64,000 nucleotides of DNA, taken from positions 62,001 to 126,000 of IMG/VR virus record IMGVR_UViG_3300022744_000022; one strand, given 5' to 3'. Below are positions 25,577 to 52,848 of this stretch, piece after piece; position 1 is the first letter of the stretch; each line of letters opens with the position of its first letter. A model generated the notes under the pieces. That model was given only the letters and a program-made list of their open reading frames with translations, made no database searches and was not told where the DNA came from. The position numbers and the translations under genes are program-made.

Positions 25577-26257
25577 ATGGATGCTCTTTCGTTGCGTGTC
25601 GCCGCCCGGTTCGGGAGGATCGCTTTTGGCCAAGAAGGTAAGTTCTTGGGTCGAGACTGCCGCCTGACTTGGAGCAGGCACGGCTGGACCCTGGAAGAGC
25701 TGCCGGTCAAGGGCAAGAAAAAGTGCAAGGTGGCGGAGTTGCAGAACCCCGGGACTAGGGGTTGGGCAAACTTTGACGCTTACATCGACGGGAACATCCT
25801 GCGAGATGCGAAGCTGAGCGCTTCGGATTCGTACGAGACTATCAAGCAGAAGATGCTTGACGCTTACGAGTTGGCAGCGGAGCTGACCATCAACAAGATG
25901 ACGCCCGACGAAGCCAAGCATGCCTTGTGGCTCCGTGATCTCAAGTGGTACGAGAACGAGGTCCATTACCTCAAGATCACCCCTGAGAACACGGAACCCT
26001 TCGAGGCTGAGGGCAAGGACTACACGATCAAGGTCACGTGGACCAAGTTCTCAGTCTACTCCCCCGACTCGGACTTTCAGCAAAGTGACCCGTACTACAC
26101 GCAGTACGCGGAGTCCTCGGCCCAAGGGGCACGTAAGCTGTACCAGACTTTGAAAGCGGATCCGAACGCGCTCAAGAGCGTTCCTTGGTCCAAGCTGGGC
26201 GATTGGTTCATCAAGAACAAGATCCCCTACAAGACCAACTTCTCCCAGTGGACCTGA
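25577..26257 (+). CDS. hypothetical protein with N-terminal RVAARF tag
   Basis: MDALSLRVAARFGRIA... Confidence 0.7.
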   Translation: MDALSLRVAARFGRIAFGQEGKFLGRDCRLTWSRHGWTLEELPVKGKKKCKVAELQNPGTRGWANFDAYIDGNILRDAKLSASDSYETIKQKMLDAYELAAELTINKMTPDEAKHALWLRDLKWYENEVHYLKITPENTEPFEAEGKDYTIKVTWTKFSVYSPDSDFQQSDPYYTQYAESSAQGARKLYQTLKADPNALKSVPWSKLGDWFIKNKIPYKTNFSQWT

Positions 26258-26267
26258 GGCTAAACCG

Positions 26268-29147
26268 ATGACAAATCAAATTAGGACTGCGGGCCAGCTC
26301 AGGGCTGCTAGGTACCGCCTTCAGTGGCAAGGGGTTTTGGGCGATGGCCCTGTAACAGCTAAGCACCCAGAGCAGGAAGGTGTTTACGAAGTTACCGAGT
26401 ACGCTAATGGCGGCGCGGGGTGGCTGCTTAAAAAGAAGGCTACTGATCCCTCCGGTATTAGTGGCGGCCGTTTTCGTAGTCTAGAGTCCGCTATCAAGGA
26501 CGCTGAAGATCACGCTTTTGGAACTGGGCGTTGGCGGCACAAGACGGCTACAACAGCCGAACGAGTCCTGTCCCGCTTTGAGGAAGGCAAACCTGCCGAC
26601 CCCACGGAGAACATGAGTCCTGAGGACGCCAAGAAGTGGCGTGAGCAGACGGACGAGCACAAGGACGAGTTCAAGTCTGCGGCTGACAAGACGGCCACCA
26701 AGGTCGAGATCAAGCTACAGTACGACAGCCCTACGAGTGTCGGTAAGATCGTGTCGCCTTCGGGGCGAGCTGAATACTACTACACCCTCGGGAACGGCGC
26801 GAAGATGAGCTATTCCGACCGGGAGAAATTCCGGTACCAACTACGCAACCAAGCAAACGTGCGTGAAGCTGAGAAGTTGGTGAAGGAATTGGATCAGAAG
26901 GTGCCGTCCAAGACGGCCGCTGCAAAGAAGCCCTCGCGTCCCTCGGTTGAGGAAACCCCTGAGGAAAAGCGTTTCACGCAGGAACGTGAGAAGGTCGAGA
27001 AGGCGCTTGAGGACTTGCGGGAAGAGATCGCGGATCGCTTCCCTATCCCAGAGGATCGTCGGCATCCGCCGGAAGCACGCGAAGTCCTCAACCACTACCT
27101 TCTTGCGGATCGCCTGCAACACAAGGCGTTCATGCAGTCCGTGGGTGGTAACTCGGACGAGCCCTCAGTTCTCCGAGAAATGTTTGGGCTCTTGGCCAAG
27201 TCGGAAGCAGAGATCAAGAAGGCCAAGCGCTTGCTGGCTGAGGCGGCTGCTATGGAAAAGCGGAAGTCTGCTTCATCGGTTAGTGTGTTGACCCGCTTCC
27301 TGACAGCGGATCAGGACAAAGCGGCCCCCGAGCAGGTGGACAAGTATTTCAAGCAGGTCAAGAAGGACAACCCGTCCTACAGTGACTCGCAGGCCTACGC
27401 GACCGCGTGGTCCATCTACTGCAAGCACAAGAATCCTGGCTCGGAGTCGTGCCACCAGGACGAGTACCTGACGGGCAAGACGGCCGCTTGGAAGGCTCCC
27501 GCGATCAATCAGGCTCTCGCCAAGTTGATCGCCAAGAAGGTAGACCGCCATTTCGTCACGGACCTCTTGAACGAAAAGCTGTCGGGGCGTAGCTGGGAAG
27601 CCAAGCTGAAAGAGGCCATTGGGAAAGCCGTGGCCCCCACGCAAATGCGTGATCAGGTTGAAGCACAGCCCGCGATCAAGAAGTGGCTGGCGGACCTTTC
27701 GGATTCGGAGCTTTCCAAGATCCGTGACTTGCTAGAGGAAACCCTCAACCACGGCAAGAGTGAGCAGTACAAGGCCAAGCCCGACGCTTGGAAGACGGCC
27801 TCAAGCCCTCAAGAGCTGCATGAGATGCGCAAGATGTTGGAGCGTTCCGGGTACGACCCCGATGACGCCCAGGTCTTGCAAGAAGAGGGTATGGGCCCCG
27901 ATGAGCTGGCGGAGCGTCTTCGGGTTCGCCCCGGGGCCCCCGGCAGCCTTGGCTACTCGCACCGGCTCAAGTTGATGCTGGAGAAGAAGGCGCTGCAAGC
28001 CATCGCGTGGATGGAGCGCAACGGCTATCGTGAGGACCCCCTGCTGCGTGAGCTGCAACAGCAGCTTCGGCGCGGGACGCCGAGTGCCCTGGCAGGTGCC
28101 CAAGAGATCTTGGAATCCGCGATCGAGGCGTACGACATCCCGATCAAGTTGGCCTCGGATGTGACGGCGGCTCGTAAGCCCAAGAGCATCGCCGAGAAGA
28201 AGGACCTTCAACTGCTCATCGATCAGTTGAAGCGCAACCCGAAGGACGGGGACGCAGAGCGTGCTCTGCGTGGGGATTGGGAGTACCGAGACGCGGACAT
28301 CGCGAAGGTCAAGGCGCAGACCAAGACAGCGGGTGCTGGGGAGGACATGATCCCGCAGATCATTCAAGATCTATCCCGGATTCATGGCTTGGGTGCGGTC
28401 GAGGTCAACGATTTCTCCCGCCCCGGCGCATCTACAGTAGATTTTTCGGTGTTCGCTGATCTCAAAGTCACGGCTTCGGGGAGTGTTCAAACACGGCGTA
28501 ACGGACCTTACGAGAAGAAACCGTTGGAGTTTCAGGCTGATCTACGCAGTGTCAAAAACACGATCTTAAGTCTGTTGAAGAAGCACCGAGCATACGACGT
28601 GATGGTGGTGATGCCTCTGCGTAAGAATTCAGCGCAAGATCGCCTTTCTGAGCCGGGGCCAAAGTTTTATGACGATTCGATCGTGCGAATTTCATTTTCA
28701 CTCGCTTTACAAGCAAAGACCGCTGGGCACAGCTATGCCGTAGATAGCATGTCGGTCTTGTTCGTTGAGGGCCGTCGCATGACCCCGTTCAACCGCGACA
28801 CGATTGACGATATCAACCACACTTCGATCGAGGTTGTGGCTGACGATGGGGAGCTGCACGAGGCTAACCTGAAGTTTCTAGGCTACCAGTCTTCTGGGAT
28901 TTTGACGCGCATTGATGAGCAGAACGGTCTACGTCGTGAGACTCGCGTGGATGTCCAGTACCCGGTAGACGAGGGTGGGTCGTCCCAGACTTCGGCACGT
29001 ACGGCACTCTCGGCTTTGGTCCGCCTGGGTAAGAAACTCGACTTCCTCGTAGAGCCCGTAGCCCGTGGGTACCAACCCCAGCACCGTCAAACCAGCTTCG
29101 TAGCCAAACCGAAGGGACCTAAGAGCCCCTTCGGTAGGTTCCGGTGA
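26268..29147 (+). CDS. modular polyprotein-like protein with repeated KTA junctions
   Basis: 959 aa; seven KTA motifs separate short unrelated segments. Confidence 0.75.
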   Translation: MTNQIRTAGQLRAARYRLQWQGVLGDGPVTAKHPEQEGVYEVTEYANGGAGWLLKKKATDPSGISGGRFRSLESAIKDAEDHAFGTGRWRHKTATTAERVLSRFEEGKPADPTENMSPEDAKKWREQTDEHKDEFKSAADKTATKVEIKLQYDSPTSVGKIVSPSGRAEYYYTLGNGAKMSYSDREKFRYQLRNQANVREAEKLVKELDQKVPSKTAAAKKPSRPSVEETPEEKRFTQEREKVEKALEDLREEIADRFPIPEDRRHPPEAREVLNHYLLADRLQHKAFMQSVGGNSDEPSVLREMFGLLAKSEAEIKKAKRLLAEAAAMEKRKSASSVSVLTRFLTADQDKAAPEQVDKYFKQVKKDNPSYSDSQAYATAWSIYCKHKNPGSESCHQDEYLTGKTAAWKAPAINQALAKLIAKKVDRHFVTDLLNEKLSGRSWEAKLKEAIGKAVAPTQMRDQVEAQPAIKKWLADLSDSELSKIRDLLEETLNHGKSEQYKAKPDAWKTASSPQELHEMRKMLERSGYDPDDAQVLQEEGMGPDELAERLRVRPGAPGSLGYSHRLKLMLEKKALQAIAWMERNGYREDPLLRELQQQLRRGTPSALAGAQEILESAIEAYDIPIKLASDVTAARKPKSIAEKKDLQLLIDQLKRNPKDGDAERALRGDWEYRDADIAKVKAQTKTAGAGEDMIPQIIQDLSRIHGLGAVEVNDFSRPGASTVDFSVFADLKVTASGSVQTRRNGPYEKKPLEFQADLRSVKNTILSLLKKHRAYDVMVVMPLRKNSAQDRLSEPGPKFYDDSIVRISFSLALQAKTAGHSYAVDSMSVLFVEGRRMTPFNRDTIDDINHTSIEVVADDGELHEANLKFLGYQSSGILTRIDEQNGLRRETRVDVQYPVDEGGSSQTSARTALSALVRLGKKLDFLVEPVARGYQPQHRQTSFVAKPKGPKSPFGRFR

Positions 29148-37802: not shown

Positions 37803-38033
37803 CTGCGCGGCGGATACTTCGCTTATACTGGATCTAGCCTGGAAACTCTTTTAGAACCAAGGACTTAGGCATCACTGGTGGGGCCAGCCGCACGATAAGG
37901 GCACTCGGATGCTCTCCCGGTGCGAAGGGTTGCGCGATAGGGCGCACTTACCTCGACGGTCCACAGGGCTTCACGATGCATCATGAAGTTTCCAATGCCA
38001 TTCGGCGTTCGTTCGCTGGTGTAGGCGTGCAGA

Positions 38034-38222
38034 ATGCCGTCTGACCTTGACTGTCCCCGCTGCCATCACCCGATGACCCAGCACTACGTGGGTGAGGGGT
38101 GAGGTGACAAGTGCTGGGAGCGTGATCACCCGCATGACAGCGGGCGCTGCGGGTGTCGGTACAAGCCCCCTGAAAAACCGAGTCCCGTGAGGGACCTGTG
38201 GGATCACCTGCTCAAAGACTAA
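38034..38222 (+). pseudogene. Cys/His Zn-binding mini-gene with internal in-frame TGA
   Basis: GGTGTA 10 nt upstream; MPSDLDCPRCHHPMTQHYVGEG*GDKCWE...RCGCRY...LWDHLLKD; TGA at 38100-38102. Confidence 0.55.
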
Positions 38223-38250
38223 CTGTTTTGTGCGGCCCGTAAGTAAACCC

Positions 38251-38763
38251 ATGTACGCCTACCGCCGGACAGCAGCAACGCGACCCTCGCAACCGGAGTT
38301 GACCGCGTTGCTTGAGAAAGCCGTCGATGTTCACTCTCAGTTACAGAGGTGGATCGATCGTTTTCCCGCCATCCTGAAAGAGGCGCGGAAAGAAGCCCAA
38401 GACCTCCCTGAGGGTCTTGTGTGGCAGGACCGTTTTGTCCCGTACTGGAGCGAACTAGACGCCTGGGAAAAAGAGCTGTCGGAACTCTCGTACCAGGCTG
38501 AGGGTCTAGAGTACCCCAAGGGTTCCGCCAACGTGGCGTTACGCCGGACGATTGAGAACACCCTTAGCAAGCACTCTACCCCCGATAAGGCCAGGCTTAC
38601 GTATGCCATCGATAGGGTGCATTTCGAGTTCTCCACGAAGCTGAACCGAAAAGACCACATTGCCTACGAGATCTCTCGCTTGGAGACATGGGCCAGGGCC
38701 TTTGAAGCGTGGACCCACGAAGCCAAACGCACTCTCCTGGCCTCAATCAAGTTCACTCGTTAG
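38251..38763 (+). CDS. hypothetical protein with N-terminal YRRTA motif
   Basis: MYAYRRTAA... Confidence 0.6.
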   Translation: MYAYRRTAATRPSQPELTALLEKAVDVHSQLQRWIDRFPAILKEARKEAQDLPEGLVWQDRFVPYWSELDAWEKELSELSYQAEGLEYPKGSANVALRRTIENTLSKHSTPDKARLTYAIDRVHFEFSTKLNRKDHIAYEISRLETWARAFEAWTHEAKRTLLASIKFTR

Positions 38764-38788
38764 CTCCGAGTTGGTGTAGCCGCCTTTC

Positions 38789-39772
38789 ATGGCGCTACCC
38801 CTCGAAAAACTCCTGGCAGTCAAAATCATCATCTCGCATCAGAACTGTGCTGATGGCACGGCGGCTGCGATGTTCCTGCACGACGTTCTCCCTGACGCCC
38901 AGATCCGGTTCTTGCAGTATGGGACCGAAGCGTATCGGACGTTGCAGGCGGAGCCCGGAATGCTCTTTCTGGACTTCTCGCCTTCCCCCGAGACATACCA
39001 GCAGTTCATCGCCCAGGGGGCGCTCATCCTGGACCACCACAAGGGTGCTCAAGCCATCGTAGAGGCGTTCGGGGAGTCCGGGGTATTCGGAGATGAGGTC
39101 AAGGACCCGGGGGTCTGCGGGGCCTTCCTGGCGTACCGTGAGGCCTGGTTTAGGCTCAAGCACACGGACGGCAAGCCCGGGCCCTCTCCGGAAGAAGCAG
39201 GGTTTGGCGGCCAGATTGCTCGTTTGGCTGGGATCCGGGATACCTGGCAGCGCCAGGACCCCACGTGGGACGAGGCTTGCGTGCTCGCTGAGGCGATGCG
39301 GTTTTACCCTGCCGAGTCCTGGCTGATTGACCGACCATTTGCCCCGGAGAATCGAGCTTGGTGGGACGCTCGCCTGGCTACCGGCCGTATCTTGGTTGAG
39401 CGCAACGTCAGGTCCGTGAAGAAGGCAGTTGATGGGGCGTACCGCTTCACGACTTCGCGAGGCACCCGTGTCTGCCTGTTTTCGGGGGTCCCATTGTCGA
39501 GCGACGCCGCCGAGTTGGTGGACCATGATGCGGACCTTGTGGTCGGGTTCGACTACTACGCGATGGAGCAGGGTGTGGCACCCTTGGTCTTCTCAACCCG
39601 CTCCCACACAACCTTCAACTGCCTGGAATTCTGCAAAGCGCACGGCGGGGGCGGCCACACCAAAGCGGCAGGCTTCTCGGTCAAGTTCGATCCGAAGGTG
39701 GGGGCACAGGATCCCTACTCGGTGTTCGAGGGCTTGTTGGAACGCTACGAAGCGTCGGTTCAACCGGGCTGA
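38789..39772 (+). CDS. DHH/DHHA1 phosphoesterase (oligoribonuclease NrnB-like)
   Basis: SHQNCADG, FLDFS, LDHH, STRS, GGGGHTKAAG. Confidence 0.85.
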   Translation: MALPLEKLLAVKIIISHQNCADGTAAAMFLHDVLPDAQIRFLQYGTEAYRTLQAEPGMLFLDFSPSPETYQQFIAQGALILDHHKGAQAIVEAFGESGVFGDEVKDPGVCGAFLAYREAWFRLKHTDGKPGPSPEEAGFGGQIARLAGIRDTWQRQDPTWDEACVLAEAMRFYPAESWLIDRPFAPENRAWWDARLATGRILVERNVRSVKKAVDGAYRFTTSRGTRVCLFSGVPLSSDAAELVDHDADLVVGFDYYAMEQGVAPLVFSTRSHTTFNCLEFCKAHGGGGHTKAAGFSVKFDPKVGAQDPYSVFEGLLERYEASVQPG

Positions 39773-39830
39773 TAATTCATGCGTGACGGGGGTTTAACGA
39801 ACCGCTCACTCTGAGCGCCGTGGAGCCCCT

Positions 39831-40796
39831 TTGGACCAAGCCCTGCACTCTGAGCGTGTAGCTCACCGCTTCCTGATCGCCTCGTTCAAGCCGGGCGACT
39901 ACATCTTGTTCGGCAAGTTCCGGAACAAGCGTGGGCGCGTGGTCCGCATCTTCAACGATGAGCGGGACATCCCGTACATCGAGATTCAGCCGGTGCCCAA
40001 GGGCCGCAAGAAGAACAGGATTTTTGGGCTCTACACGATCCGCCAGATGACCCCTGAGGCCATCCAGGAAGCGCAGCAGTTGGAGGCGGCGGAACGGGCT
40101 CTCGTCCACAAGGTGGCGGCCCGTTACCTGGAAGCCACTCAGATGCCGCCTGGGTGGGTTGAGCACAAAGGGTCTGCGGGGCGTTCCTTTTGGATCAGCC
40201 CCGACGGTAAGGCGGAGATCAGCGACACGGGTCGTAAAGGCAGCCCGCAGCGCTTCCAGGTCTTCTTTCTTCAGGACGGGAAACGGCACGAGGACATCGG
40301 CTGGCCGTCCCTCAAGAAGGCGCTCCAGTACCTGAGTGGCGAAGTGGGGTTGAGTGCCCACCCAATGGCCAAGCGGGAGGGCGGCAACCTGGAGAACTTC
40401 CTGGACGGCTTCGCACGACGGCACTCTAGGCTTGGGCGGCTTCTCCCTAAGGTCGTGGAGAAAGCTCAAGGATCCAGCTCGGGGCACGGAGAAGCTCGCC
40501 AACACGGTAACGAGATCTGGCTGTTCCCGAAGTTCTGGGACCTCGATCTCAAGACCCAAGATTTCGTACTGGCTCACGAGATCGGGCACTATGCGTTGAG
40601 TCGGAAACCCGGCACCTGGTTGATGGACCTCGGGAAAGAGCTGGGCGTTGACGTGTGGGACACGGGCAGCCTACCCTTCGGACAGTTCAATCAAGACGAG
40701 GCGTTCGCGGATTCCTTTGCTAGTTACTTCTTAGAGCCGGGTGAACTGCGGAGACGCTACCCTGCTTGGGTTACTTTCGTTGAGGCCGTCCTGTGA
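39831..40796 (+). CDS. multi-module protein: KOW-like, unknown and zincin HExxH modules, two RVAxRF-type tags
   Basis: RVAHRFLIA, FKPGDYILFGKFRNKRGRV, KVAARYLEA, LAHEIGH...EAFADSFA. Confidence 0.7.
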   Translation: MDQALHSERVAHRFLIASFKPGDYILFGKFRNKRGRVVRIFNDERDIPYIEIQPVPKGRKKNRIFGLYTIRQMTPEAIQEAQQLEAAERALVHKVAARYLEATQMPPGWVEHKGSAGRSFWISPDGKAEISDTGRKGSPQRFQVFFLQDGKRHEDIGWPSLKKALQYLSGEVGLSAHPMAKREGGNLENFLDGFARRHSRLGRLLPKVVEKAQGSSSGHGEARQHGNEIWLFPKFWDLDLKTQDFVLAHEIGHYALSRKPGTWLMDLGKELGVDVWDTGSLPFGQFNQDEAFADSFASYFLEPGELRRRYPAWVTFVEAVL

Positions 40797-43700
40797 ACAC
40801 CATGCAAACACGATTGGTCGAACGCTTCACACGGGTAGGGGCCTACTCCGAGGACACCCTAGAGATTGTTGCGGCCGGTCTTGCTCTACTGATCGCGCAG
40901 AACTACATCGTCACCAACCCCTTCTTCGATGAGAAGGAGATCCGAAACTACCTGCTGTTGCGCAAGCAGTTTCACGGGGACTTCGTTCAAGCGTGCCTGG
41001 ACTTGGCAGACGCCTTTGAAGAGGGGCAGTTCGGTCAGGCGGTTCTACCCGCTGTCCCAGCCTTGCGGGCCATCGGGCATCTCGGGGTCAAGCAGGATCA
41101 GCAAGCAATCCGCCAACTCGCAAGAGCGTTCCGAGGGCTCAAGCACCTCAAGTACCGGGATGTCGAAAACCCGAAGCTCATGCGTCTCATCATGATGGCG
41201 CGTAAACTTGATGTCACCACCGGGGCAGATGGTAGGGACATCAAGGACTTCTTGGAGAATCTTGTTAAGATCCAGGCGGTGCCGACAAGACTCCGGACCC
41301 TTCTTCGCAAAGTCATCAAGTTGCCCGTCCCGGGCAGGACGCTCACCGAGAATGCCGATCCAGGCGCTTGGTTCGAGATGCCCGAGGACAAGAAACAAAG
41401 CCTTCGCGAGCTGACCGAGAAGGTTGAGCAAGAGCAGCTTGGGATCTGGGAGAAGTACAAAGACGCCAGTGACGATGAGCGGATGGCGGCTTACCAGAGT
41501 GCTGCCCGTCGCCTACAGAAGATTCAGAGCATCGCAGGCGTGAACCTGGGTGTTATCAAGCGTGACGATGAGGTCCCGCTTGACACGCTTTTGAAGAAGG
41601 AAACGCGACTCGAATCCGACGGACCGACGGAGTACACACGACTCAAAATTGAGGACTACCTCAAAAAGACAGGGGCGTACCGCTTCCAGCGCAAGGAAGG
41701 TGATCCGCTACCTCGTGAGGTCAGCAAGCTGCTCACATTGTTGCGCAAGGCCAAGACCTTCTCGACAATGCAGCGCGTGATCAAGGATGCTGTGGATCGT
41801 CAGGTGTTGGGCAGGGCGTCCACCGAAGATGTCGATCACATCATCACGCAAGCGAACAAGAACCGGGCGTTGAAAGAGGGGAAACCTCTCACGCCTCTAC
41901 AGTTCGAGCCTAAGAGCGTAGAGCAGTTTCAGGTGGACCACGATACGGGCCCCGTGGCGTTCGACCCTGAGTACACGGATGACGAAAAGAAGCAGTTGCT
42001 GGGTCGTGTCTCCCGTGCTTTGAGTGATCTAGAGAGTGTCTACGGAAAAGGCTTCTGTGGTAAGCATGCCAAGAAGCTCGCGTTCCGTTTCAACAAGGGG
42101 TACAGCGGGACCGCTTCCGCTCACTACTTCGTTTGGGATGACCGTCGGACGTGGCAACCCAGGGTAACGTTTGGTCCGGAGTTCGAGGGCCTCTTGGCTC
42201 ACGAACTCTCGCACTACCTGGAAGACTTGCTGGCGTACCAGATTCAGAAGCAGGACGAACCAGAGCGCATCGAGGCCCTCCTGGGTAAAGGGATCGAGGG
42301 AGGACCAGGCGTCCTGTTCTCCAACACGGGGGTGTCCCTGAGGCTCTTCGCTGAGGGTGGTGCCCTGGAGAGTTACCGAGGACACCTAAGTAAGTCGGTC
42401 CCGGAGTTCGTTGAGTTCATCGACGCCGTGCTTGCAACCCCGGACTACAAGCGCTGGGAGGACAAGCTTGGATCAGCGTACGACACCGCACTGCCCATGG
42501 CCATCAAGGCGCTGACAGGGATGAGCTACTACGACTTGCCCAAAGAGCACCCGTACTACGGTTTGATCGACAAGGCGCAATACCGCTCGGACCTGCCCCC
42601 GGAAGTGAACGACGAGACTCAGAAGCAGTTCAAGAACCTGATGGATGGGGATGGGCGCAAGCTCAACTACTACAACAGCTCCACCGAGGTCTGGGCCCGG
42701 ATGTGCGAGCAGTACGTGTACAACCGGCTGATCGATGCGGGGATCTCGAACCCCTGGCTCACACAGATGAACTACGAGGAAGATGTCTTCATGAACGAGA
42801 AGACCTTCGATACGCAGTTACGTCCGATTATGGACAAGATCTTCGCCAAGCTGAAAGGCCGCAAACTCATTGCCAGTGTGCCCATGAGCCCCTTGCGTGA
42901 ACGTCTGGCAGACCGCTTCTTGCTCATCAATCGGGTAGCTGCTCGTTACAAAGAGAAGAAGCAGGTAAAGTCGGAGGACGGCGGCAAGACTACCGTCTAC
43001 GTCTACTCTGAGCGGCAGATCGCCAATCGGAACAAGGCGAAGGCTGAGCGAGTCCAAAAGCTCAGCGGCGCTATCAAGAAGCTGAGGGCCAAGGTCAAGA
43101 AGGACTTGGGGTCCAAGGATCCTGAGACGGCTCGTACAGCACTCGCGGTGGCCCTCATGGATCATACCTATGAGCGAGTTGGCAACGAGAGTTCTGCCAA
43201 GGACGGGCACTTCGGGGTCACGGGGTGGCAGCGTAAGCACGTGAGCTTCGGCAAGGACGGGGCGTTCATCAAGTACGTGGGCAAGTCCGGGGTCAAGCAC
43301 GAGAAGAAGGTCACGGACTCGGCGATCCGTAGTGCGTTGAAGGCTGCTTACGACTCCCTGGAAGGTGATGACACGGGCGTTCTGGAGTGGGACGGGGGCA
43401 AGGTCACGGCCGAGAAGGTGAACCAGTACCTGGAGCCCTTTGACGTTACGGCCAAGGACATCCGTGGCTTCCACGCCAACGACCAGATGCGGGTCAACCT
43501 CAAGAGCGTGCGCTCGAAGGGCGGCTCGCTTCCTGAGGACAAGAAGAAGCGTGAGGACAAGCTCAAGAAGGAGTTCGCGGAAGCTCTTGAAGCGACCGCA
43601 GAGTGCGTGGGGCACGAGGCCGCTACACTCAAGAATCAGTACCTTGTCCCCGGCCTAGAGGACTCGTTTCTCAAGGATGGGACGGTCATCGACAAGCTCG

Positions 43701-43906
43701 GGAGCCAACACGAAGACGAGATCCCCGGCGGCTTGGCGGACAAGAAAAAGCCAAGCGACTTTGACCCCAAGCAACTCGCCAAGGGAATCAAGGTCGAGCT
43801 GGAGCACACCGATGATCGAAATCTCGCGCAAGAGATCTCGATGGATCACTTGACCGAAGATCCGGATTACTACAGCAAGCTTGAGAAGATGGAGTCGGAA
43901 AAATGA
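40793..43906 (+). CDS. large polyvalent protein: HExxH/LPD1-like, type IB DNA topoisomerase and DUF5661-like domains
   Basis: HELSH; STEVWARMCEQYV; RVGNE, YVGKSG, TAKDIR, VGH...NQY; GIKVELEHT...DHLTEDPDYYSKL. Confidence 0.85.
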   Translation: MNTMQTRLVERFTRVGAYSEDTLEIVAAGLALLIAQNYIVTNPFFDEKEIRNYLLLRKQFHGDFVQACLDLADAFEEGQFGQAVLPAVPALRAIGHLGVKQDQQAIRQLARAFRGLKHLKYRDVENPKLMRLIMMARKLDVTTGADGRDIKDFLENLVKIQAVPTRLRTLLRKVIKLPVPGRTLTENADPGAWFEMPEDKKQSLRELTEKVEQEQLGIWEKYKDASDDERMAAYQSAARRLQKIQSIAGVNLGVIKRDDEVPLDTLLKKETRLESDGPTEYTRLKIEDYLKKTGAYRFQRKEGDPLPREVSKLLTLLRKAKTFSTMQRVIKDAVDRQVLGRASTEDVDHIITQANKNRALKEGKPLTPLQFEPKSVEQFQVDHDTGPVAFDPEYTDDEKKQLLGRVSRALSDLESVYGKGFCGKHAKKLAFRFNKGYSGTASAHYFVWDDRRTWQPRVTFGPEFEGLLAHELSHYLEDLLAYQIQKQDEPERIEALLGKGIEGGPGVLFSNTGVSLRLFAEGGALESYRGHLSKSVPEFVEFIDAVLATPDYKRWEDKLGSAYDTALPMAIKALTGMSYYDLPKEHPYYGLIDKAQYRSDLPPEVNDETQKQFKNLMDGDGRKLNYYNSSTEVWARMCEQYVYNRLIDAGISNPWLTQMNYEEDVFMNEKTFDTQLRPIMDKIFAKLKGRKLIASVPMSPLRERLADRFLLINRVAARYKEKKQVKSEDGGKTTVYVYSERQIANRNKAKAERVQKLSGAIKKLRAKVKKDLGSKDPETARTALAVALMDHTYERVGNESSAKDGHFGVTGWQRKHVSFGKDGAFIKYVGKSGVKHEKKVTDSAIRSALKAAYDSLEGDDTGVLEWDGGKVTAEKVNQYLEPFDVTAKDIRGFHANDQMRVNLKSVRSKGGSLPEDKKKREDKLKKEFAEALEATAECVGHEAATLKNQYLVPGLEDSFLKDGTVIDKLGSQHEDEIPGGLADKKKPSDFDPKQLAKGIKVELEHTDDRNLAQEISMDHLTEDPDYYSKLEKMESEK

Positions 43907-44160
43907 GCTACGATCGTCGCACAGCCAGCTTATTCGATCAGAAGCTGGCTCGCGCTGTCTCTAGGGCTAAAGCTCATTGGGGGTCGGGCTGGGCGAACCT
44001 CACACCCAACATGCAAAACGCTTATGTTTGTCAAGGCGTGGTTGCGGAGCTTGGTTCCATGGATTGGGATCACCTGGACTCCGCTGATCCTGAGGTCCAG
44101 AAGGTCGTAGATCGGCTGAAAGCAATTTCTGAGTTGTGTTTGGATGCGACTCGAAGTTGA
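43903..44160 (+). CDS. hypothetical protein with N-terminal YDRRTA motif
   Basis: MSYDRRTASLF... Confidence 0.6.
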   Translation: MSYDRRTASLFDQKLARAVSRAKAHWGSGWANLTPNMQNAYVCQGVVAELGSMDWDHLDSADPEVQKVVDRLKAISELCLDATRS

Positions 44161-44165
44161 GGCGA

Positions 44166-44483
44166 TCAAACTTCATCGCACTTGACGGGACAGCTCGGGC
44201 CTCGCGGTGAAGATCCGCAAGTAGGACACGGGGACGTGGGCTTGACGTAATCAGGGATCGTGTGGACTGGGGCGGTGGCTTCGACCCACACGACTCGGGT
44301 CCTGTTGTCGTGCCCGTGGATCGCCACCACGTCATCGATGGTGGCGTACATACCCATGGAGGAACGCTTGGCGAGCCAGTGAATCACGCATTCACGGTTC
44401 GTGAACTCCACTCCTTCGGCTACGACACCTGTACCACTGACACCCGAGGAATCTTCGTCACGATGAAGCTGAAAGAGGCGCAT
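44166..44483 (-). CDS. conserved phage hypothetical protein
   Basis: FQLHRDEDSSGVSGTGVVAEGVEF...IHGHD; GGAG SD. Confidence 0.7.
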   Translation of the reverse strand: MRLFQLHRDEDSSGVSGTGVVAEGVEFTNRECVIHWLAKRSSMGMYATIDDVVAIHGHDNRTRVVWVEATAPVHTIPDYVKPTSPCPTCGSSPRGPSCPVKCDEV

Positions 44484-44488
44484 TGGAT

Positions 44489-45448
44489 TTACTCCTGGAT
44501 ACGGGTCGAACCGCACCCGCACACAATCTCAGCGGAACTATAGAAGGCTCCGCAATCGGCACATTCAAGTGGGAACATGTCCGGCATATAGGTGTGGACC
44601 GGGACATCGATCTTTAGGTGCTTGGGTTGCCCAACTATGACTAGCTCGTTGACCTTACCCCGCTTGTCGCCCTTCGAGTTGACGTTCCGCTTAGCGCCCA
44701 CGGTGTGCAGATCGAAGCCCTCGTACAGCTCATGAACCAAGGGGGCGTCCGAGTTGGACTGCACGCACATGACACCGCGATCCACAAGTTTGCGAAACAG
44801 CTCGGCAAGTTCCCGTTGTTCCTCGGGCCCGAACTGCCCTGCGTAGGCTGTAAAGCTGGCGGTTTCTGAGACAGGGACGTAGGGCGGATCGAAGTACACG
44901 AGGTCGCCCGCTTGGGCGTCGTGGACCGCCTCAGCAAAGCCGCCGACCCGTAGGGTAGCGAAGCGTTGAAGGGTTTCTTGACACGCCTCGATGTTGTGGC
45001 GGTCATAGAGGCTGGGGTTGTCGTACTTGCCGTAGGGGGCGTTGAACTTCCCCGAGCGGTTGACCCGGTAGAGGCCATTGAAGCAGGTGCGGTTCAGGTA
45101 GAGGGTGCGGGCCGCCTTCTCAACAGGCCCCTCGTGCTCCGCCGCTCGAACGCGCTTGAATTGGGCTTCCGTGTTCCAGTCCTCGTCTAGTTTGTATTGG
45201 TCCAGACGGCGCAGTAGCTCGGGAAGTTGATCGCGGACCACCTGGTAGCAGTTGATCAGCTCGGGGTTGAAATCGTTAAGGACGGCTTGGCGGAAACGCC
45301 GCCGGTCAGCGAAGTAGAAGAACGTGGCTCCGCCGCCGATGAAGGGCTCGTAGTACGTCAAGCTCTTGTGGGTGATGAGTCGGGATAGGACGCGGAGCAA
45401 CTGGCTCTTGCCTCCGACCCACTTGAGAAACGGCGCTGTCCTTGTCAC
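44489..45448 (-). CDS. dam: Dam-family DNA adenine methyltransferase with C-terminal Cys tail
   Basis: KWVGGK, EPFIGGGA, FNGLYRVN, DPPY. Confidence 0.92.
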   Translation of the reverse strand: MTRTAPFLKWVGGKSQLLRVLSRLITHKSLTYYEPFIGGGATFFYFADRRRFRQAVLNDFNPELINCYQVVRDQLPELLRRLDQYKLDEDWNTEAQFKRVRAAEHEGPVEKAARTLYLNRTCFNGLYRVNRSGKFNAPYGKYDNPSLYDRHNIEACQETLQRFATLRVGGFAEAVHDAQAGDLVYFDPPYVPVSETASFTAYAGQFGPEEQRELAELFRKLVDRGVMCVQSNSDAPLVHELYEGFDLHTVGAKRNVNSKGDKRGKVNELVIVGQPKHLKIDVPVHTYMPDMFPLECADCGAFYSSAEIVCGCGSTRIQE

Positions 45449-45822
45449 TCGTCCTCAGCATCGGCCAACGTCTCGGCCTCAGCGGTCACTGCTTGGATGA
45501 AGTCTTGGAAGAAAGCCTGCCAGGCACGTACCGTAGGGATTTCCCCACGCTCTTTAGCCCAGGCTTCGTAGGCAGTGATGACCTCGGGACCCACCGCTTG
45601 AAAGAACAAGGCACGCAAAGGGTTGTCGGAAGCAAGGGACCGTTTCAGGACAGTTTGGGCAGCCTCAAGGAACAACGCGGTAGACTCGCCACCGACTTCG
45701 CAACCCTTCTCGAAGGCATCCTTCGCGAGAGCCAACAGGGCCTCTTGGGCCTGTGCCGGGGGGATGTGGGCTCCCACCATGAGCTGGTACGCGGGATCGA
45801 AAGCAGGTAGGTCGGTGGTCAT
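45445..45822 (-). CDS. hypothetical protein
   Basis: Overlaps both neighbours by 4 nt. Confidence 0.6.
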   Translation of the reverse strand: MTTDLPAFDPAYQLMVGAHIPPAQAQEALLALAKDAFEKGCEVGGESTALFLEAAQTVLKRSLASDNPLRALFFQAVGPEVITAYEAWAKERGEIPTVRAWQAFFQDFIQAVTAEAETLADAEDE

Positions 45823-46490
45823 GAATCGATGGCCTCGAAAAGGGCGAATAGGTCTTGCGGGGCTGCGTCCCTGGGCTTCATGTCGGACATCGGGGAATAG
45901 CTCAGGCGATGCACGGGGGATACACCGAGCCGGTCCAAGGCTTCCCGGTGTTTGGGTGTGCCGTACCCCGAGTTCTTGGTGAGCCCGTAACCCGGGTGCA
46001 GGCGGTCCAGCTCCGCCATGATGCGGTCGTGGAACACCTTGCCGATGACCGAGGCAGCGGAAACCGCCGGAATCAGAGCATCGGCTTTGGGTAACGCCAC
46101 GGCCCCCTGGACGCCCCGGCTGCCGTCGATGATGACCAAGGGTGTCTGCGTGTGCCCTTTGGCCCGGTGAGCACCCAAGGCCCCCTGAATGGCCCTGGAG
46201 TGAGCCTCAAGCAATACCTCACCAACGCCCCGTCGGTCGATCTCGTCCGGGTCCACCCGGATGATGCAGTGCGAGAGCACCGTCAGGCTCTCGTAGAGCC
46301 GCTCCCGAACCGCTCCCGTGAGCTTCTTGGAATCCTGGACCCTGGGATCCGACCACCCTCTTGGCGCTACAGCAGCACAGACGATCAACGGCCCGGCCCA
46401 GCTCCCGTACCCGCACTCATCCGAACCACATACGAAGTCGTATGTGGGCAGATCTCGGGCCAACGCAGGGGGAATTTCACCGGAGGCCAT
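45819..46490 (-). CDS. rnhB: ribonuclease HII
   Basis: GSDECGYGSWAGP, DSKKL, IIDG, KAD...AASV.GKV..D, GYGT..H. Confidence 0.9.
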   Translation of the reverse strand: MASGEIPPALARDLPTYDFVCGSDECGYGSWAGPLIVCAAVAPRGWSDPRVQDSKKLTGAVRERLYESLTVLSHCIIRVDPDEIDRRGVGEVLLEAHSRAIQGALGAHRAKGHTQTPLVIIDGSRGVQGAVALPKADALIPAVSAASVIGKVFHDRIMAELDRLHPGYGLTKNSGYGTPKHREALDRLGVSPVHRLSYSPMSDMKPRDAAPQDLFALFEAIDS

Positions 46491-46806
46491 GGAGGATCCT
46501 TTCCGCTCGGTTGGGTTCTCGTTTGCGGAGTTCGGCCTCGACTCGGTTGTAGAACGCGGCTCGATTCAGCATTCGGTATCGCACGGTGGAAACCATGCCG
46601 CCGCCCATCCGGAGGGCACTGAACGTAATGGTCAGGAACGAAACCATGGCCAGCGTGCTCAGGCGTTCGACCTGGAGCTTGGCGAGGATCAGGTCCGCAT
46701 CGGGGGCGAGTTCCCCAAGCTCGGGGCTCATCCGTTCGTAGATGGCATCGACCAACGAGTCGTCGGACCCTTGCCACGTGTAGATCGTTTCGAGCCACGA
46801 CTCCAT
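46477..46806 (-). CDS. hypothetical protein
   Basis: GGTGTA (46822-46817) 10 nt before ATG. Confidence 0.6.
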   Translation of the reverse strand: MESWLETIYTWQGSDDSLVDAIYERMSPELGELAPDADLILAKLQVERLSTLAMVSFLTITFSALRMGGGMVSTVRYRMLNRAAFYNRVEAELRKREPNRAERILHGLR

Positions 46807-46832
46807 GTGGGGTGATTACACCACGCGGAGGA

Positions 46833-48422
46833 TCAACCGCTCAATGTGTGATTGTGCCCGTTTTGCGTATGATTGTGCCCGGAATCGGTCGTGCCATGGG
46901 TGTGCCCGGAGTCAGTTACTGAGATCCCTGTGGCGCTGGACCCTAAGGTATGGGTGTGCGAGGTCTGGTTTAGGTTCAACGTGTAGGTGTACCACACATC
47001 AACTCCGTGGTTACCATGATGAAGACCTACGACATCAAAGGTACCGTTCACGAGGTCCGTTGCCGAGAAGGTCCTGACTGCCCCGTCAACACTGACCTTT
47101 AGAAATGCCGTAACGTTGTCGTTAGGTACGCCATAGAGCGACCCCAAAGCGATAGTTACGCTAGCGCCCCCACCCACAGGGGCACTGTTCACGTAGTCGG
47201 TGACGAAAAAGAAGGGTTTGGCACCTGGCACGACTCCACCGCCGATTGGTTTGGTGAAGACCTCAGACAAAGCGCTACCGTTGCGGCCTGTGCCGTTGAT
47301 TGTGATTGTGCCACCTATCCAACCCGCTGGGAACGTCACGTCCATGGTGCGGGGCACCCCGGGCTGTGCAGTGGGGACGCTACTGGCGGCAGGTTGCGCG
47401 ATAGAACCCTGAGCCAAGCCGTCTATCTCTAGAGAATCCAGGGCATACCAGCCCGTCAATGTGATCGCGGTGTTTACAGCAGTCGTTGCCCCCACCGTAT
47501 GAGCGTGTCCGGGGTCTGAAACAGTGGTGTTAGCCGTACCACTGTTGACTGCGAGGCCTGTGGTACTTGAGTTGTTCGTGGGTGTGGTTGAGTCAACCGT
47601 GAGAGGGTCCGCGCCGCCTGCGTGCGTTGCAGCATGGTTGGTGGGGGTACGGGCGTCAGAAAGTCGGGGATCATTTCCTGCCGTAACCGTGTTGGCCGCT
47701 GCGCCGTATGGGACTTCTTCCCACGCTGTGTTCGTAGCGTTCCGTTTGAGAAAGCCGTTCGCGAGCTTGGCAGGAAGCGCGTCTGCTTGCAGACCAGCTA
47801 CTGACGGGGCCGGGTAAACGCCTGCCAAGTCGCCACTGGCTGGACCTACGGGTGGCCCCCCACCGAAGACGATGGGAGCATGCGTCCACTGGTTCAGGAA
47901 GGAATCAAAAATGAGAGTGTCCCCGTTACTCGGGGGCGGGACTTCAATCGGGATCCCCTCAAGGCCTACAACCGTGGGATTCGGGTATGTCCCCGAGAGG
48001 TCGCCACCTGCGGGGCCAGTTGGGGGGCTCCCTGAGATCCAGTTGGTGCCGTCGGACCAGTTGGGTCCATTTTCCGTTGTGTTCCAGACTACGGTCCCTG
48101 AGGGGTATCCCGCAGCATCCGGAAGGGTCAACGTCGTGTACACCTCTGGGGTGACAAACATCTGGGCGATGATGACGCCCACTTGATGGAACTTCCGAAT
48201 CGTGCCTGCCTCAAACGAGAGCAACGAACGGCTAGATCCCGCGATGTCGATGAAGCCGCCCACCGGGACATAGCAGGCGACTTTACGATTCTGGTTCTCG
48301 TACCCCACGTCCAGATCGTTGATCAGGACCGGATTCGTGTTGGGACGCCCATCGGCCAGCAAGCCCGTGTGGGTCAGCCGGATCAGAAGGACCGGGCGGG
48401 GGGCTGGGTTCGGCGTGGGCAT
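46833..48422 (-). CDS. virion fibre-like protein
   Basis: Two GPAxGDLxGxYPxPxV repeats, GNDPRLSDAR, HAATH, and DPGHAH/HTH/HNH repeats typical of trimeric fibres. Confidence 0.65.
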   Translation of the reverse strand: MPTPNPAPRPVLLIRLTHTGLLADGRPNTNPVLINDLDVGYENQNRKVACYVPVGGFIDIAGSSRSLLSFEAGTIRKFHQVGVIIAQMFVTPEVYTTLTLPDAAGYPSGTVVWNTTENGPNWSDGTNWISGSPPTGPAGGDLSGTYPNPTVVGLEGIPIEVPPPSNGDTLIFDSFLNQWTHAPIVFGGGPPVGPASGDLAGVYPAPSVAGLQADALPAKLANGFLKRNATNTAWEEVPYGAAANTVTAGNDPRLSDARTPTNHAATHAGGADPLTVDSTTPTNNSSTTGLAVNSGTANTTVSDPGHAHTVGATTAVNTAITLTGWYALDSLEIDGLAQGSIAQPAASSVPTAQPGVPRTMDVTFPAGWIGGTITINGTGRNGSALSEVFTKPIGGGVVPGAKPFFFVTDYVNSAPVGGGASVTIALGSLYGVPNDNVTAFLKVSVDGAVRTFSATDLVNGTFDVVGLHHGNHGVDVWYTYTLNLNQTSHTHTLGSSATGISVTDSGHTHGTTDSGHNHTQNGHNHTLSG

Positions 48423-48468: not shown

Positions 48469-48831
48469 ATGGCGCTCAATGACCTGGACCGTTGGAACCG
48501 CAAGCAAGCGGCATACATTCGCCGGAAAGCCCTGCAAGAGCGGGCCATCAACCATCTGGGCGGTAAGTGCCGGATTTGCGGCTACGACAAATGCATGGCG
48601 GCCCTGGACTTCCACCACACCGATCCTCAAGGCAAAGACTTCAACATCTCGTCGGGCCTGACTTCGTGGGAACGGATCAAACCTGAGCTTGAGAAGTGCG
48701 TGCTCTTGTGCTCGAACTGCCACCGTGAAGTTCACGACGGGTTGCACCCGGGGTACCTCGAACTCGATGGCGCTTGGGGCTCACAGTACGACACGGGTGT
48801 AGAGGATGAGCTGGAGTTGATGGACTCATGA
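48469..48831 (+). CDS. HNH endonuclease-like protein
   Basis: LGGKCRICGY...LDFHH...LCSNCHREVH. Confidence 0.8.
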   Translation: MALNDLDRWNRKQAAYIRRKALQERAINHLGGKCRICGYDKCMAALDFHHTDPQGKDFNISSGLTSWERIKPELEKCVLLCSNCHREVHDGLHPGYLELDGAWGSQYDTGVEDELELMDS

Positions 48832-49262
48832 GAGCCTATTGGTTAGACGCAAAAGAGTGCCTGGATCTCCCTCTTGAGGAGTTGCAACGGCACGGGGTTC
48901 TGTACGAATTGATCCCAGTTAACGACCCTTGGCCCCACCTGAATCGAATCAAGGCGGAGCGAGGGTACGTTGCTGAGGACTTGGTGGACCTGAACGCAAC
49001 GCGGCCGGATTTCGAGAAGCTGGGCCAGGCGTTCAAGCGTGAGCATTCTCACGATGAGGACGAGGTTCGCTTCATCCTCTCGGGCGGCGGGACCTTCGAC
49101 ATCCGGTCAAACGATGACTGCTGGATGCGCGTCTGGGTTGAGCCCGGGGACCTGATCATCATCCCGGCGGGTCGCCACCACCTGTTCCACTTGACCAGCG
49201 AAGGCATCGAGGCCATCCGGCTGTTCAAGAACGAGGCGGGCTGGGTGCCTAGCTACCGTTAG
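48828..49262 (+). CDS. mtnD: acireductone dioxygenase (ARD, cupin)
   Basis: EHSHDEDEVRFILSGGGTFDIR...PGDLIIIPAGRHHLF. Confidence 0.88.
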   Translation: MRAYWLDAKECLDLPLEELQRHGVLYELIPVNDPWPHLNRIKAERGYVAEDLVDLNATRPDFEKLGQAFKREHSHDEDEVRFILSGGGTFDIRSNDDCWMRVWVEPGDLIIIPAGRHHLFHLTSEGIEAIRLFKNEAGWVPSYR

Positions 49263-51750: not shown

Positions 51751-52848
51751 TCAGCCCATCCCCAGGATGATGCTCATGCAGACCTGATCGAGTTTCTTGC
51801 GGTCCGGCTGCTTGGGCAACCCCGAGGTCTTGACCAACTCGTTCAGCTCTGCGTCTTGCTTGTCCGAGTACGCCACGAGTTCTTCGTAGGTCCACTTGCC
51901 GTGACGGATCTCCAGAAGCTCTTGAGCATCGGGACGACGCACGCGGATCACGCCGTCGGTCAAGATCTCACGGCACATGCGAGAGAGCCGGACGAGGTGC
52001 ATCGCATGCTTGGTGTCGTAACCCCACTTGGCCTCAAGCTCAGCACGAGCCGGGTTGCGGGTCTTGACCCAGGTCTGATAGTTCTGCCACTCCCTGAGAC
52101 GGCCCGTGTAACGACGCTCCAGGTCCAGCAGGTGGATGAAGTTGGTATCGAACCCGACGGCCCGAGAGGCGGCGGTCCAAACCCGCTCATCCACCTGATC
52201 TTCACCCCACTGCGTGATCTCAAGCAAGCGACGGCTGAACTCGTCCTGCATCGCTTGACGCAACGCGGGATCCAAGTGCTCCATCTCGTGCCACGACCAC
52301 TGGTCGATCTGCTTCTGGATGGCCGCCTGAGCCGCCGCAAGCTGATCTGCGGGGATCACGGTCCGCTCGGGCAGGTCGAACTCAGCCCGGGTGGGCGGAG
52401 CCTTGGGAGGGTCCTTGAGCCAGCGGTAGTGGGCGTTGATACGCTTCATCTGGGCACGGCTGTACCCAGAGAAAGTGTGCTTGGCCTTCTGGCTGATGAA
52501 AGCCTGACGGGCCTCAAACAGCTTCTCCATGAGCGGGTGGACCAGCAGGTGGTCACTGGGGTCCGTGAAGATGATCTCTAGAGCGTTCGGGTTGGCGTCA
52601 GCCGCCAAGTGCATGAACTTCCGGAGGTCGAAAATCGTGAGATCCACCGGCTGGCTTTGGACCGCCTGCTCGAAGACCTCGGAGATCCCGAGGTAGTAGT
52701 GGATGGGCGCTACCGCGATACCCCGGATGTCCATGTCGCTGGTGGGCAACGATGTTCCGTACGCATGACTGCCGTGGCGAGTCATAAAGAGCGTGCGCTC
52801 GGGGAGCCACTTGAGATTGCCTGTGTACTGCGTCCAGTCGAAAGTCAT
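51751..52848 (-). CDS. Pol-beta superfamily nucleotidyltransferase (YcgL/T4 NrdC.11-like)
   Basis: HGSHAYGTSLPTSDMDIRG, NPNALE, FSGY, YDTKHAMHLVRL. Confidence 0.85.
   Translation of the reverse strand: MTFDWTQYTGNLKWLPERTLFMTRHGSHAYGTSLPTSDMDIRGIAVAPIHYYLGISEVFEQAVQSQPVDLTIFDLRKFMHLAADANPNALEIIFTDPSDHLLVHPLMEKLFEARQAFISQKAKHTFSGYSRAQMKRINAHYRWLKDPPKAPPTRAEFDLPERTVIPADQLAAAQAAIQKQIDQWSWHEMEHLDPALRQAMQDEFSRRLLEITQWGEDQVDERVWTAASRAVGFDTNFIHLLDLERRYTGRLREWQNYQTWVKTRNPARAELEAKWGYDTKHAMHLVRLSRMCREILTDGVIRVRRPDAQELLEIRHGKWTYEELVAYSDKQDAELNELVKTSGLPKQPDRKKLDQVCMSIILGMG

Follow-up and report, generated by a model that had tools for sequence, protein, structure and literature searches.

The Locus and Its Source

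The DNA analysed here, referred to as the window, is a stretch of 64,000 nucleotides corresponding to bases 62001-126000 of the IMG/VR virus record IMGVR_UViG_3300022744_000022. At 40793..43906 on its plus strand lies an uninterrupted open reading frame (ORF; P0001) of 1,037 amino acids (aa), in which an N-terminal module containing a zincin and the Pfam domain LPD1 (the N-module), a minimal catalytic cassette of a type IB topoisomerase (TopoIB) and a C-terminal DUF5661 module follow each other. Short peptides of the type RVAARY, called tags below, mark module ends. An earlier note on this DNA had described the product as a polyvalent protein with an apparently intact TopoIB, and had proposed that it is delivered with the virion to relax incoming DNA. 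The polyvalent-type architecture is borne out, and so is the intact TopoIB, by both sequence and fold; the delivery part rests on analogy. Every string quoted in the note sits where it was placed, and in the hidden Markov model searches that it had called for, the three Pfam families it named (Topoisom_I, LPD1 and DUF5661) all score above cut-off in P0001.

The source of the window is an uncultured huge phage. The record measures 208,486 bp and has a CheckV completeness of 44%, so that the whole genome would amount to roughly 450-500 kb. Phage genes for replication and nucleotide metabolism elsewhere in the window encode an SNF2 helicase, an intein-bearing DnaB, a family A polymerase, ThyX, Dam and RNase HII. 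A megablast of positions 38000-47000 against the GenBank phage collection returned no close DNA relatives, PHROGs holds no family for the 1,037-aa protein, and NCBIfam gave no meaningful match.

The ends of the ORF are identical to those of the JGI gene call. Its start codon, GTG at 40793, shares bases with the stop codon of the preceding gene (GTGA), and the ATG at 40802 is an equally plausible start. As the modules exist as separate genes in other phages, the ORF could be taken for an artefact of assembly or gene calling that unites adjacent genes. The frame is nevertheless open throughout, without a stop, and both tags stay in frame across the seam between N-module and cassette. Moreover, independent assemblies from ENA and JGI (P0002, P0003) contain the full-length architecture at 87% identity, and identical architectures are found at 87%, 76%, 70% and 65% identity across independent ENA, JGI and Logan assemblies. 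An artefact is thus hardly conceivable.

A Minimal TopoIB Catalytic Cassette

The TopoIB cassette comprises 256 aa, residues 714-969 (42932..43699, plus strand). Pfam Topoisom_I (PF01028) covers residues 744-948 with an E-value of 1.2e-22 and 80.8 bits against a cut-off of 23.7; in a genome-wide scan the score was 85.2 bits. In a phmmer search, residues 731-985 align to the TopoIB of variola and vaccinia virus (2h7f, E 5.8e-11). In this alignment R795 (ERVGN, 43175-43177), K831 (GKSG, 43283-43285), R891 (KDIRG, 43463-43465), H941 (VGHE, 43613-43615) and the tyrosine Y950 (KNQYL, 43640-43642), all on the plus strand, coincide with the five catalytic positions of variola TopoIB. A column count on an alignment of 207 homologous cassettes showed these five columns to be invariant, except for one Q at R891. 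All five catalytic residues listed in the earlier note are therefore present. The note had placed the tyrosine in NQY, a string that occurs twice; the catalytic residue is Y950 and not Y879.

The fold gives the same picture, so that the Pfam and structure matches which the note had named as decisive were both found. An AlphaFold model of residues 700-1037, with a predicted local distance difference test (pLDDT) of 82.8, matches variola TopoIB-DNA complexes in Foldseek with an E-value of 5e-11 and template modelling (TM) scores of 0.54-0.60. The matches to 3igc, 2h7f, 3m4a and 1a35 range from E 5e-11 to 1e-8, with TM scores of 0.5-0.6. Variola TopoIB ranks first, followed by the bacterial, archaeal and human enzymes, and the tyrosine recombinases lie at least eight orders of magnitude behind. 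The jumbo-phage TopoIBs of PaBG and Motura match by fold as well.

This ranking bears on the possibility that the cassette is a site-specific recombinase or resolvase, acting in the resolution of concatemers or telomeres. Its catalytic fold is indeed shared with the tyrosine recombinases, and its weaker matches by fold include XerH, lambda Int and Cre. However, the top matches by sequence and by fold are all TopoIBs, by 8-9 orders of magnitude in E-value, and the lysine of the GKSG hairpin, aligned with the catalytic lysine of variola TopoIB, is invariant. Neither a second DNA-binding domain nor a tetramerisation domain is present, and two of five near-complete related genomes have direct terminal repeats rather than hairpin ends. 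A recombinase is thus highly improbable.

What sets the cassette apart from the poxviral and bacterial enzymes is its N-terminal edge. The N-terminal DNA-binding domain of these enzymes, which completes the clamp around the duplex, was not found in the cassette. The alignment to variola TopoIB opens only at variola residue 57-66, and the cassette starts, directly after the tag, with one β-hairpin that corresponds to the last hairpin of that domain. This points to an enzyme that consists of the catalytic domain only. Judged by its sequence and its modelled fold, the segment 714-969 is a putatively catalytically competent TopoIB of the poxvirus type, cut down to the catalytic domain. Compared to the TopoIBs of vaccinia and variola virus and of Deinococcus radiodurans (PF01028), it shares the catalytic fold (TM 0.54-0.60 to 3igc and 2h7f), the R-K-R-H-Y pentad at aligned positions and the size of the catalytic domain. 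It differs from them in lacking the N-terminal domain of ~60-80 aa save that last hairpin, in being only ~20% identical to the solved enzymes, and in its position within a 1,037-aa fusion, where it is preceded by an RVAARY-K-x-KKK leader.

TopoIB has been noted in a few cultured jumbo phages, namely PaBG, Motura, Lu11 and phiRSL1 (Iyer et al., 2021; PMC7824862). Like the cassette, the jumbo-phage enzymes, including the ‘topoisomerase’ of Xanthomonas phage PhiXhv-15, are phage TopoIBs with extra sequence around the catalytic domain. The PhiXhv-15/Ep032 group is about 30% identical to the cassette, and PaBG and Motura are recognised by fold. In contrast to the cassette, these proteins measure 541-668 aa and are described as a component of repair or topology. 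The cassette of the window belongs to a separate tight clade (>50% identity) that is shuffled among hundreds of architectures.

Spread and Shuffling of the Cassette

The spread of the cassette was surveyed in an exhaustive HMMER search with residues 705-975 against representative protein clusters. In total 2,177 clusters match, and 559 reach E<=1e-30. Among these 559, the best 150 are 51-77% identical over ~255 aa, in host proteins of 272-3,381 aa. In the 207 aligned proteins the cassette is mostly internal (122), less often N-terminal (41) or C-terminal (41), and essentially alone in 3. Its edges are sharp, as it begins with RVAARYK.KKK and finishes with YLKDGTV. Both the order N-module-TopoIB and the order TopoIB-N-module occur. 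Partners that Pfam recognises are HD, GNAT, PAP2, 2H/LigT, the poly(A) polymerase head, RNA ligase, HAD_SAK_1, InPase, NUDIX, ParB, superoxide dismutase, carbonic anhydrase and ATLF; the bulk of the partner sequence has no Pfam match.

A relative of the cassette is encoded on 146 IMG/VR stretches, of which 80 were kept for the locus counts. Most of these 80 loci are on contigs of more than 100 kb, up to 619 kb. The five near-complete relatives (92-100% complete, 448-619 kb) have exactly one cassette each, in frames of 346, 347, 393, 1,808 and 2,026 aa. Models for type IIA (PF00521) and type IA (PF01131) topoisomerases found no match in these five genomes; as a control, both models detect 12-14 of 14 control genomes. 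The cassette is apparently the sole topoisomerase of its lineage, conserved and in single copy. Such a distribution fits a resident swivel for replication and transcription at least as well as an injected enzyme.

The position of the gene is conserved as well. The order CxxCxxCC gene, TopoIB, Dam and RNase HII is kept in 15-18 of the 80 loci, down to 32-50% protein identity, with the CxxCxxCC gene upstream on the same strand as TopoIB, and Dam and RNase HII downstream on the opposite strand. What varies at this slot is the partner: N-module-TopoIB-DUF5661 in the window, N-module-TopoIB in a 398-kb relative (L004), and TopoIB-HD in another (L089). The metagenome sample of the window (3300022744) also holds a second, complete huge phage, IMGVR_UViG_3300022744_000001 (L012; 447,761 bp, with direct terminal repeats). 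Its cassette is 64% identical and lies in a 346-aa frame, not inside a large fusion.

The N-Module Contains a Zincin

Residues 1-700 form one conserved unit, which is present as a stand-alone gene of ~700 aa in many huge-phage contigs and stands either before or after the cassette in relatives. The ‘unknown N-terminal region’ of the earlier note is therefore not a separate item but part of this conserved module of ~700 aa, to which the zincin and LPD1 belong as well. The AlphaFold model of the N-module (pLDDT 86) predicts an all-α region at about residues 17-365 (40841..41887, plus strand), followed by a zincin domain at about residues 374-698 (41912..42886, plus strand). For residues 17-365, no related structure or sequence was found in the Protein Data Bank (PDB), in the AlphaFold database (AFDB) or in an Atlas feature search.

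The zinc motif HELSH, reported in the earlier note at about 42200, occupies residues 470-474 (42200-42214, plus strand), and H470, E471 and H474 are invariant in 36 N-module homologues. The LPD1-like segment is likewise real: Pfam LPD1 (PF18796) matches residues 622-688 (42656-42856, plus strand) with 32.4 bits against a cut-off of 27, and STEVWARMCEQYV (residues 630-642) and GISNPWL (650-656) both lie within it. In this ‘LPD1’ region the block G619, D620, R622, Y626, E632, W634, A635, R636, E639, Q640 and Y641 is invariant in the same 36 homologues. A Foldseek search of the whole N-module model against the PDB gave nothing at E<=0.001, and among AFDB clusters the module matches only proteins named ‘large polyvalent protein-associated domain’, at residues ~335-700. 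VIA-align, which is independent of Foldseek, placed the catalytic domain of anthrax lethal factor (LF; 1yqy) at the top with Z 9.2 over residues 374-698, followed by Pro-Pro endopeptidases (PPEPs; Z 7.5-7.8) and other zinc peptidases.

On the basis of this model, the HExxH region and LPD1 are the two putative halves of one LF/M34-like zincin, in which a long insert separates the zinc-binding helix from the conserved helix that bears the glutamates. With LF/M34 and the PPEPs (PPEP-2 and PPEP-3) the domain shares the fold of residues 374-698 and the combination of HExxH with conserved downstream Glu residues. It differs from them in an identity of only 11-17%, in a likeness that is by fold, with Pfam ATLF (PF07737) unmatched in P0001 and weakly matched in one of 36 large relatives, and in the ~150 residues that separate HExxH from the conserved ExxAR...EQ helix. 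One stand-alone N-module gene (P0025, on a 335-kb JGI huge-phage contig) is located ~2 kb upstream of a type I-C-like CRISPR-Cas effector set, consisting of Cas5d, Csd1, Cas7 and a helicase, with an Acb1/2H-like phosphoesterase also close by.

The DUF5661 Module and the Upstream Gene

The protein ends in a module of residues 977-1037 (43721..43903, plus strand; IPGGLADKK...ELEHT...DHLTEDPDYY), for which three helices are predicted. Pfam DUF5661 (PF18905) matches residues 993-1035 with 46.7 bits against a cut-off of 27, which upholds the C-terminal DUF5661-like module of the earlier note. The closest Atlas clusters are viral DUF5661 proteins of 63-86 aa. Of the TopoIB proteins, 24 contain DUF5661, which in about half of these cases stands no more than 15 residues before or after the cassette. 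A literature search found no paper that mentions DUF5661. In the 54-kb Chaseviridae phage vB_VpaM_VPs20 of Vibrio (OP056089.1, L006), DUF5661 is inserted mid-way in the head maturation protease (DUF2213, phrog_530; 5338-6606), which is encoded between the terminase gene and the DUF2184 capsid gene.

Translationally coupled to the fusion ORF is an upstream gene of 321 aa (39831..40796, plus strand). Along its plus strand it contains a tag RVAHRF (39855-39872), a KOW-like barrel of ~65 aa (about 39885-40046), a tag KVAARY (40110-40127) and the HEIGH motif of a small zincin (40575-40589). Of the 207 TopoIB proteins, 41 contain the KOW-like module, which often directly precedes the cassette, as in the 344-aa protein P0175, which combines these two elements; a triad of DUF5661, KOW and TopoIB is recurrent. 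The HEIGH zincin has weak M78 and ATLF matches (Pfam M78 below cut-off). It is present in 24 proteins of the collected set, 22 of them with TopoIB, and often stands directly behind the cassette and before an N-module (P0011-P0014). As its modules are fused to TopoIB elsewhere, the two coupled genes of the window carry together a module set which in other phages is united in a single polypeptide. The earlier note mentions neither this membership of the upstream gene nor the absent N-terminal domain of TopoIB.

The KOW-like module was considered as the missing N-terminal domain of TopoIB, and this identification found no support: the PDB profile search gave only a sub-threshold match (Spt5 KOW, E 0.35) and Pfam KOW stayed below cut-off in two independent members. 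A complex prediction for the KOW-like module with TopoIB-DUF5661 scored 0.03, which is evidence neither way. Further upstream, at 38789..39772 on the plus strand, a DHH phosphoesterase is encoded (phrog_4771, E 1e-27; no Pfam match). Such a gene lies upstream of TopoIB, in the same direction of transcription, in 17 of the 80 related loci.

A Recurring Tag Peptide

The tag was searched with the strict pattern R-[VI]-[AVS]-[AS]-[RK]-[YFW]. Within P0001 two tags stand in tandem at residues 704-719 (42902..42949, plus strand), a region of low pLDDT in both models: RLADRF (residues 704-709, 42902-42919) closes the N-module, and RVAARY (residues 714-719, 42932-42949), the string that the earlier note had found at 42932, opens the cassette. 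A degenerate copy, RLVERF, is located near the N-terminus (residues 7-12, 40811..40828, plus strand), where homologous N-modules have RVVARF, RIVSRF or RVAARF. N-modules are tagged at both ends.

In the 248 collected proteins the strict tag occurs 162 times, against 0.64 in shuffles, and 68 of the 162 do not precede a TopoIB cassette. The ORFs of the 80 loci contain 112 tags against 5 of the reversed motif. TopoIB is encoded on the same strand as 108 of the 112, and roughly half of the tags lie no more than 15 residues from the first start codon. The five complete genomes have 28 tags against 4 of the backwards pattern, scattered at 2-8 per genome. Tags are situated at module junctions and protein termini, and in most genomes usually at the N-terminus (M-x-D-x-L-x-L-RVAARY...). 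In one complete relative (G002, an IMG/VR contig of 536,053 bp), 5 of 7 pattern matches end the ORF, 1-10 residues before the stop. These C-terminal tags (loci L096, L098, L099, L100 and L102) include one on a Dps/ferritin-like DNA-binding protein and one on a SWIM-finger protein. Tagged proteins recognised in other phages also include a DRAT-like ADP-ribosyltransferase (ART), a Peptidase_Mx-like protein and a poly(A)-polymerase-like protein.

The phage of the window has tags on further genes as well, at or near the N-terminus or about 95 residues in. Within the window these are a gene of 226 aa at 25577..26257 (plus strand; MDALSLRVAARF...), for which no family match was found, and a gene with a degenerate copy at 26268-29147 (plus strand). 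Outside the window, at 134981-135703, 160377-161456 and 168871-169479 in coordinates of the phage's own genome (all on the minus strand), the tagged genes encode, among others, a SprT-like HEMVHH zincin and a protein whose long low-complexity region is rich in Pro and Lys.

Third codon positions and the Arg codon families within the tag vary like the background, so the constraint acts on the peptide and not on the DNA. For the same reason, a DNA-level recombination site or a target of TopoIB was ruled out. The zincin of the N-module was likewise ruled out as a universal reader or protease of the tag, as it is absent from five complete tag-bearing genomes. If the peptide is helical, L(-3), V(+1) and Y(+5) would share one helix face and the two arginines another, which would suit a docking helix. 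A literature search found no description of this peptide.

On a bolder reading, huge phages would possess a cargo system that has so far gone unrecognised, and the RVAARY peptide would be its portable sorting signal, by which ~2-8 unrelated proteins per genome would be loaded, most plausibly into the capsid, and co-injected. By functional analogy, the peptide resembles the capsid-targeting sequence of T4 and the cargo-loading peptides of encapsulins, which are also short, terminal, transferable, borne by unrelated proteins and conserved at the peptide level. It differs from them in that there is no sequence similarity and in that the phage tag occurs at either terminus and between modules. This reading is tentative, and we consider it unlikely.

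Neighbourhood and the Question of Virion Delivery

Poxviruses package a TopoIB that supports early transcription. In analogy, the earlier note proposed a virion-delivered TopoIB that relaxes the incoming DNA. Spelled out in full, this model has the fusion synthesised late in infection and packaged into the capsid, from which it would enter the host with the DNA; TopoIB would then relax the incoming genome, and the zincin would cut the protein into working units. Several observations are in line with this model. Zincin, LPD1 and an enzyme in one phage polypeptide make up the syntax of polyvalent proteins, for which packaging has been proposed (Iyer et al., 2017; PMC5512222), and the partners InPase, 2H, ParB, GNAT and NUDIX are phage-type polyvalent domains listed in the same survey. 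The tagged DRAT-like ART is of the same class as T4 Alt, the DUF5661 of phage VPs20 is part of a head maturation protease encoded between terminase and capsid genes, and in each genome the tag marks one end, N- or C-terminal, of about 2-8 unrelated proteins, as a capsid-targeting or cargo-loading peptide would.

However, the neighbourhood of the ORF argues against this model. No recognisable head, tail or packaging gene is present within ±10 kb, nor at the syntenic locus of L004 and L089. The ORF is instead surrounded by genes of DNA metabolism: its neighbours encode the DHH phosphoesterase, the Dam methylase, RNase HII, the CxxCxxCC protein and a YAcAr protein, in an order that is kept in diverged relatives. 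The only structural-gene hint nearby is a 529-aa protein at 46833-48422 (minus strand) that PHROG families of minor tail proteins match weakly (E 6e-6) and over a short stretch of about 55 residues, which a shared repeat may explain. Furthermore, the cassette is distributed as a single-copy, sole topoisomerase, none of the tagged proteins examined matches a PHROG head or tail family, and none of 36 large relatives is fused to MuF or a portal. The proteome paper on PaBG does not report its TopoIB from virions. Delivery is therefore possible but doubtful.

The fusion can be compared with the polyvalent proteins surveyed by Iyer et al. (2017; PMC5512222). As in that survey, unrelated domains are joined in one polypeptide of a mobile element, including a HExxH metallopeptidase and LPD1: zincin/LPD1, TopoIB and DUF5661 stand in one ORF of an IMG/VR virus record, with HExxH intact. 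Partners of the cassette elsewhere are also shared (InPase, 2H, GNAT, ParB, NUDIX and ART). Unlike the surveyed proteins, the fusion has no virion-gene neighbourhood, and LPD1 is here the C-terminal part of a zincin fold instead of an independent domain. The survey's main text does not discuss TopoIB as a constituent, ‘topoisomerase’ occurring there only in a title of the reference list, and the searched text does not describe the RVAARY punctuation. A literature search found no paper that links TopoIB to polyvalent proteins or to huge phages of this kind.

A Proposed Resident Swivel in Modular Fusions

We favour, with somewhat better than even confidence, the reading that the cassette is a resident swivel of an uncultured huge phage which has been drawn into modular fusions. 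TopoIB enzymes act through a 3′-phosphotyrosyl intermediate and relax DNA independently of ATP and Mg. Accordingly for this enzyme class, Tyr950 would attack one DNA strand to form such an intermediate, the duplex would swivel, and the strand would be resealed without ATP or Mg. The basic job of the cassette would be the relief of torsional stress in a genome of ~450 kb during transcription, replication and/or packaging. Domain shuffling would then have joined it to the LF/M34-like zincin N-module in front and to DUF5661 behind; two further usual companions, the KOW-like barrel and the small HEIGH zincin, sit in the coupled upstream gene. Accessory modules have probably taken the place of the N-terminal clamp domain that was lost, and DUF5661 and the KOW-like barrel, which both recur beside the cassette, are the candidates. 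The amphipathic peptide of the RVAARY type on each module could be a signal for docking or sorting that the modules have in common, and the tandem tags at 704-719 could be a seam where the fusion is cut.

A different use of the same chemistry would make the cassette a covalent DNA anchor, in which a 3′-phosphotyrosyl link trapped at a nick or an end ties effector modules to the travelling phage genome, much as a relaxase pilots conjugative DNA. The single cassette per genome, its usual position inside proteins of up to 3,381 aa with many effector-like modules, and the strict conservation of the catalytic Tyr would agree with this. Nevertheless, in three of the five complete genomes the ORF that contains the cassette is 346-393 aa long and has hardly any cargo or none, all five catalytic residues are kept, including those for religation, and nothing in the data suggests a suicide substrate. 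An anchor is therefore very unlikely.

Four points weigh against the resident swivel as described above. Firstly, the N-terminal domain (variola ~1-57), which forms half of the DNA clamp, is gone, and full activity may need a partner. Secondly, the partners of the cassette elsewhere (ART, InPase, 2H, NUDIX, GNAT and RNA-repair enzymes) look like conflict effectors rather than replication factors, which would be odd for a housekeeping enzyme and favours delivery. Thirdly, the function given to the tag is deduced solely from where it stands and from how its hydrophobic and basic residues are arranged. Lastly, the statement that TopoIB is the only topoisomerase refers to two Pfam models and five genomes, and a divergent phage type II enzyme may escape these models.

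Other Genes of the Window

At 7165-9936 (plus strand) a DnaB-like replicative helicase is split by an intein with a LAGLIDADG homing endonuclease (Intein_splicing, LAGLIDADG_3, DnaB_C). A small gene at 44166-44522 (minus strand), convergent with the fusion ORF and adjoining Dam and RNase HII, has a precomputed Pfam match to PF26761 (Acb5), which, judged by its name, we take to be possibly an anti-CBASS family. Accessory metabolism genes typical of huge phages encode a RlaP-like RNA-repair nucleotidyltransferase (51751-52848, minus strand), a nucleoside 2-deoxyribosyltransferase-like protein (59210-60469, plus strand) and an ARD/cupin protein (48828-49262, plus strand).

Significance

TopoIB is rare in bacteria, and viral TopoIB is best known from poxviruses and giant viruses. 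New here is a polyvalent-type protein with a minimal TopoIB as its constant part, and the recurring tag peptide is the most interesting lead. With this protein, the concept of polyvalent proteins reaches into huge phages and gains a constituent that the founding survey's main text does not discuss. The cassette is among the most promiscuously shuffled domains observed, occurring in hundreds of giant proteins together with enzymes that repair RNA, degrade nucleotide signals or modify proteins, and it offers enzymology a naturally minimal TopoIB. Since TopoIB is apparently the sole topoisomerase in a large group of phages of 0.25-0.6 Mb, it also bears on how supercoiling is managed in such genomes. 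The RVAARY mark provides a concrete handle on how polyvalent proteins get sorted or cut. If the sorting-signal reading were true, the marked cargo would include TopoIB, zincins, an ADP-ribosyltransferase and a Dps-like DNA binder, and the giant multi-enzyme proteins would be concatenated cargo modules in which the tags are kept as seams.

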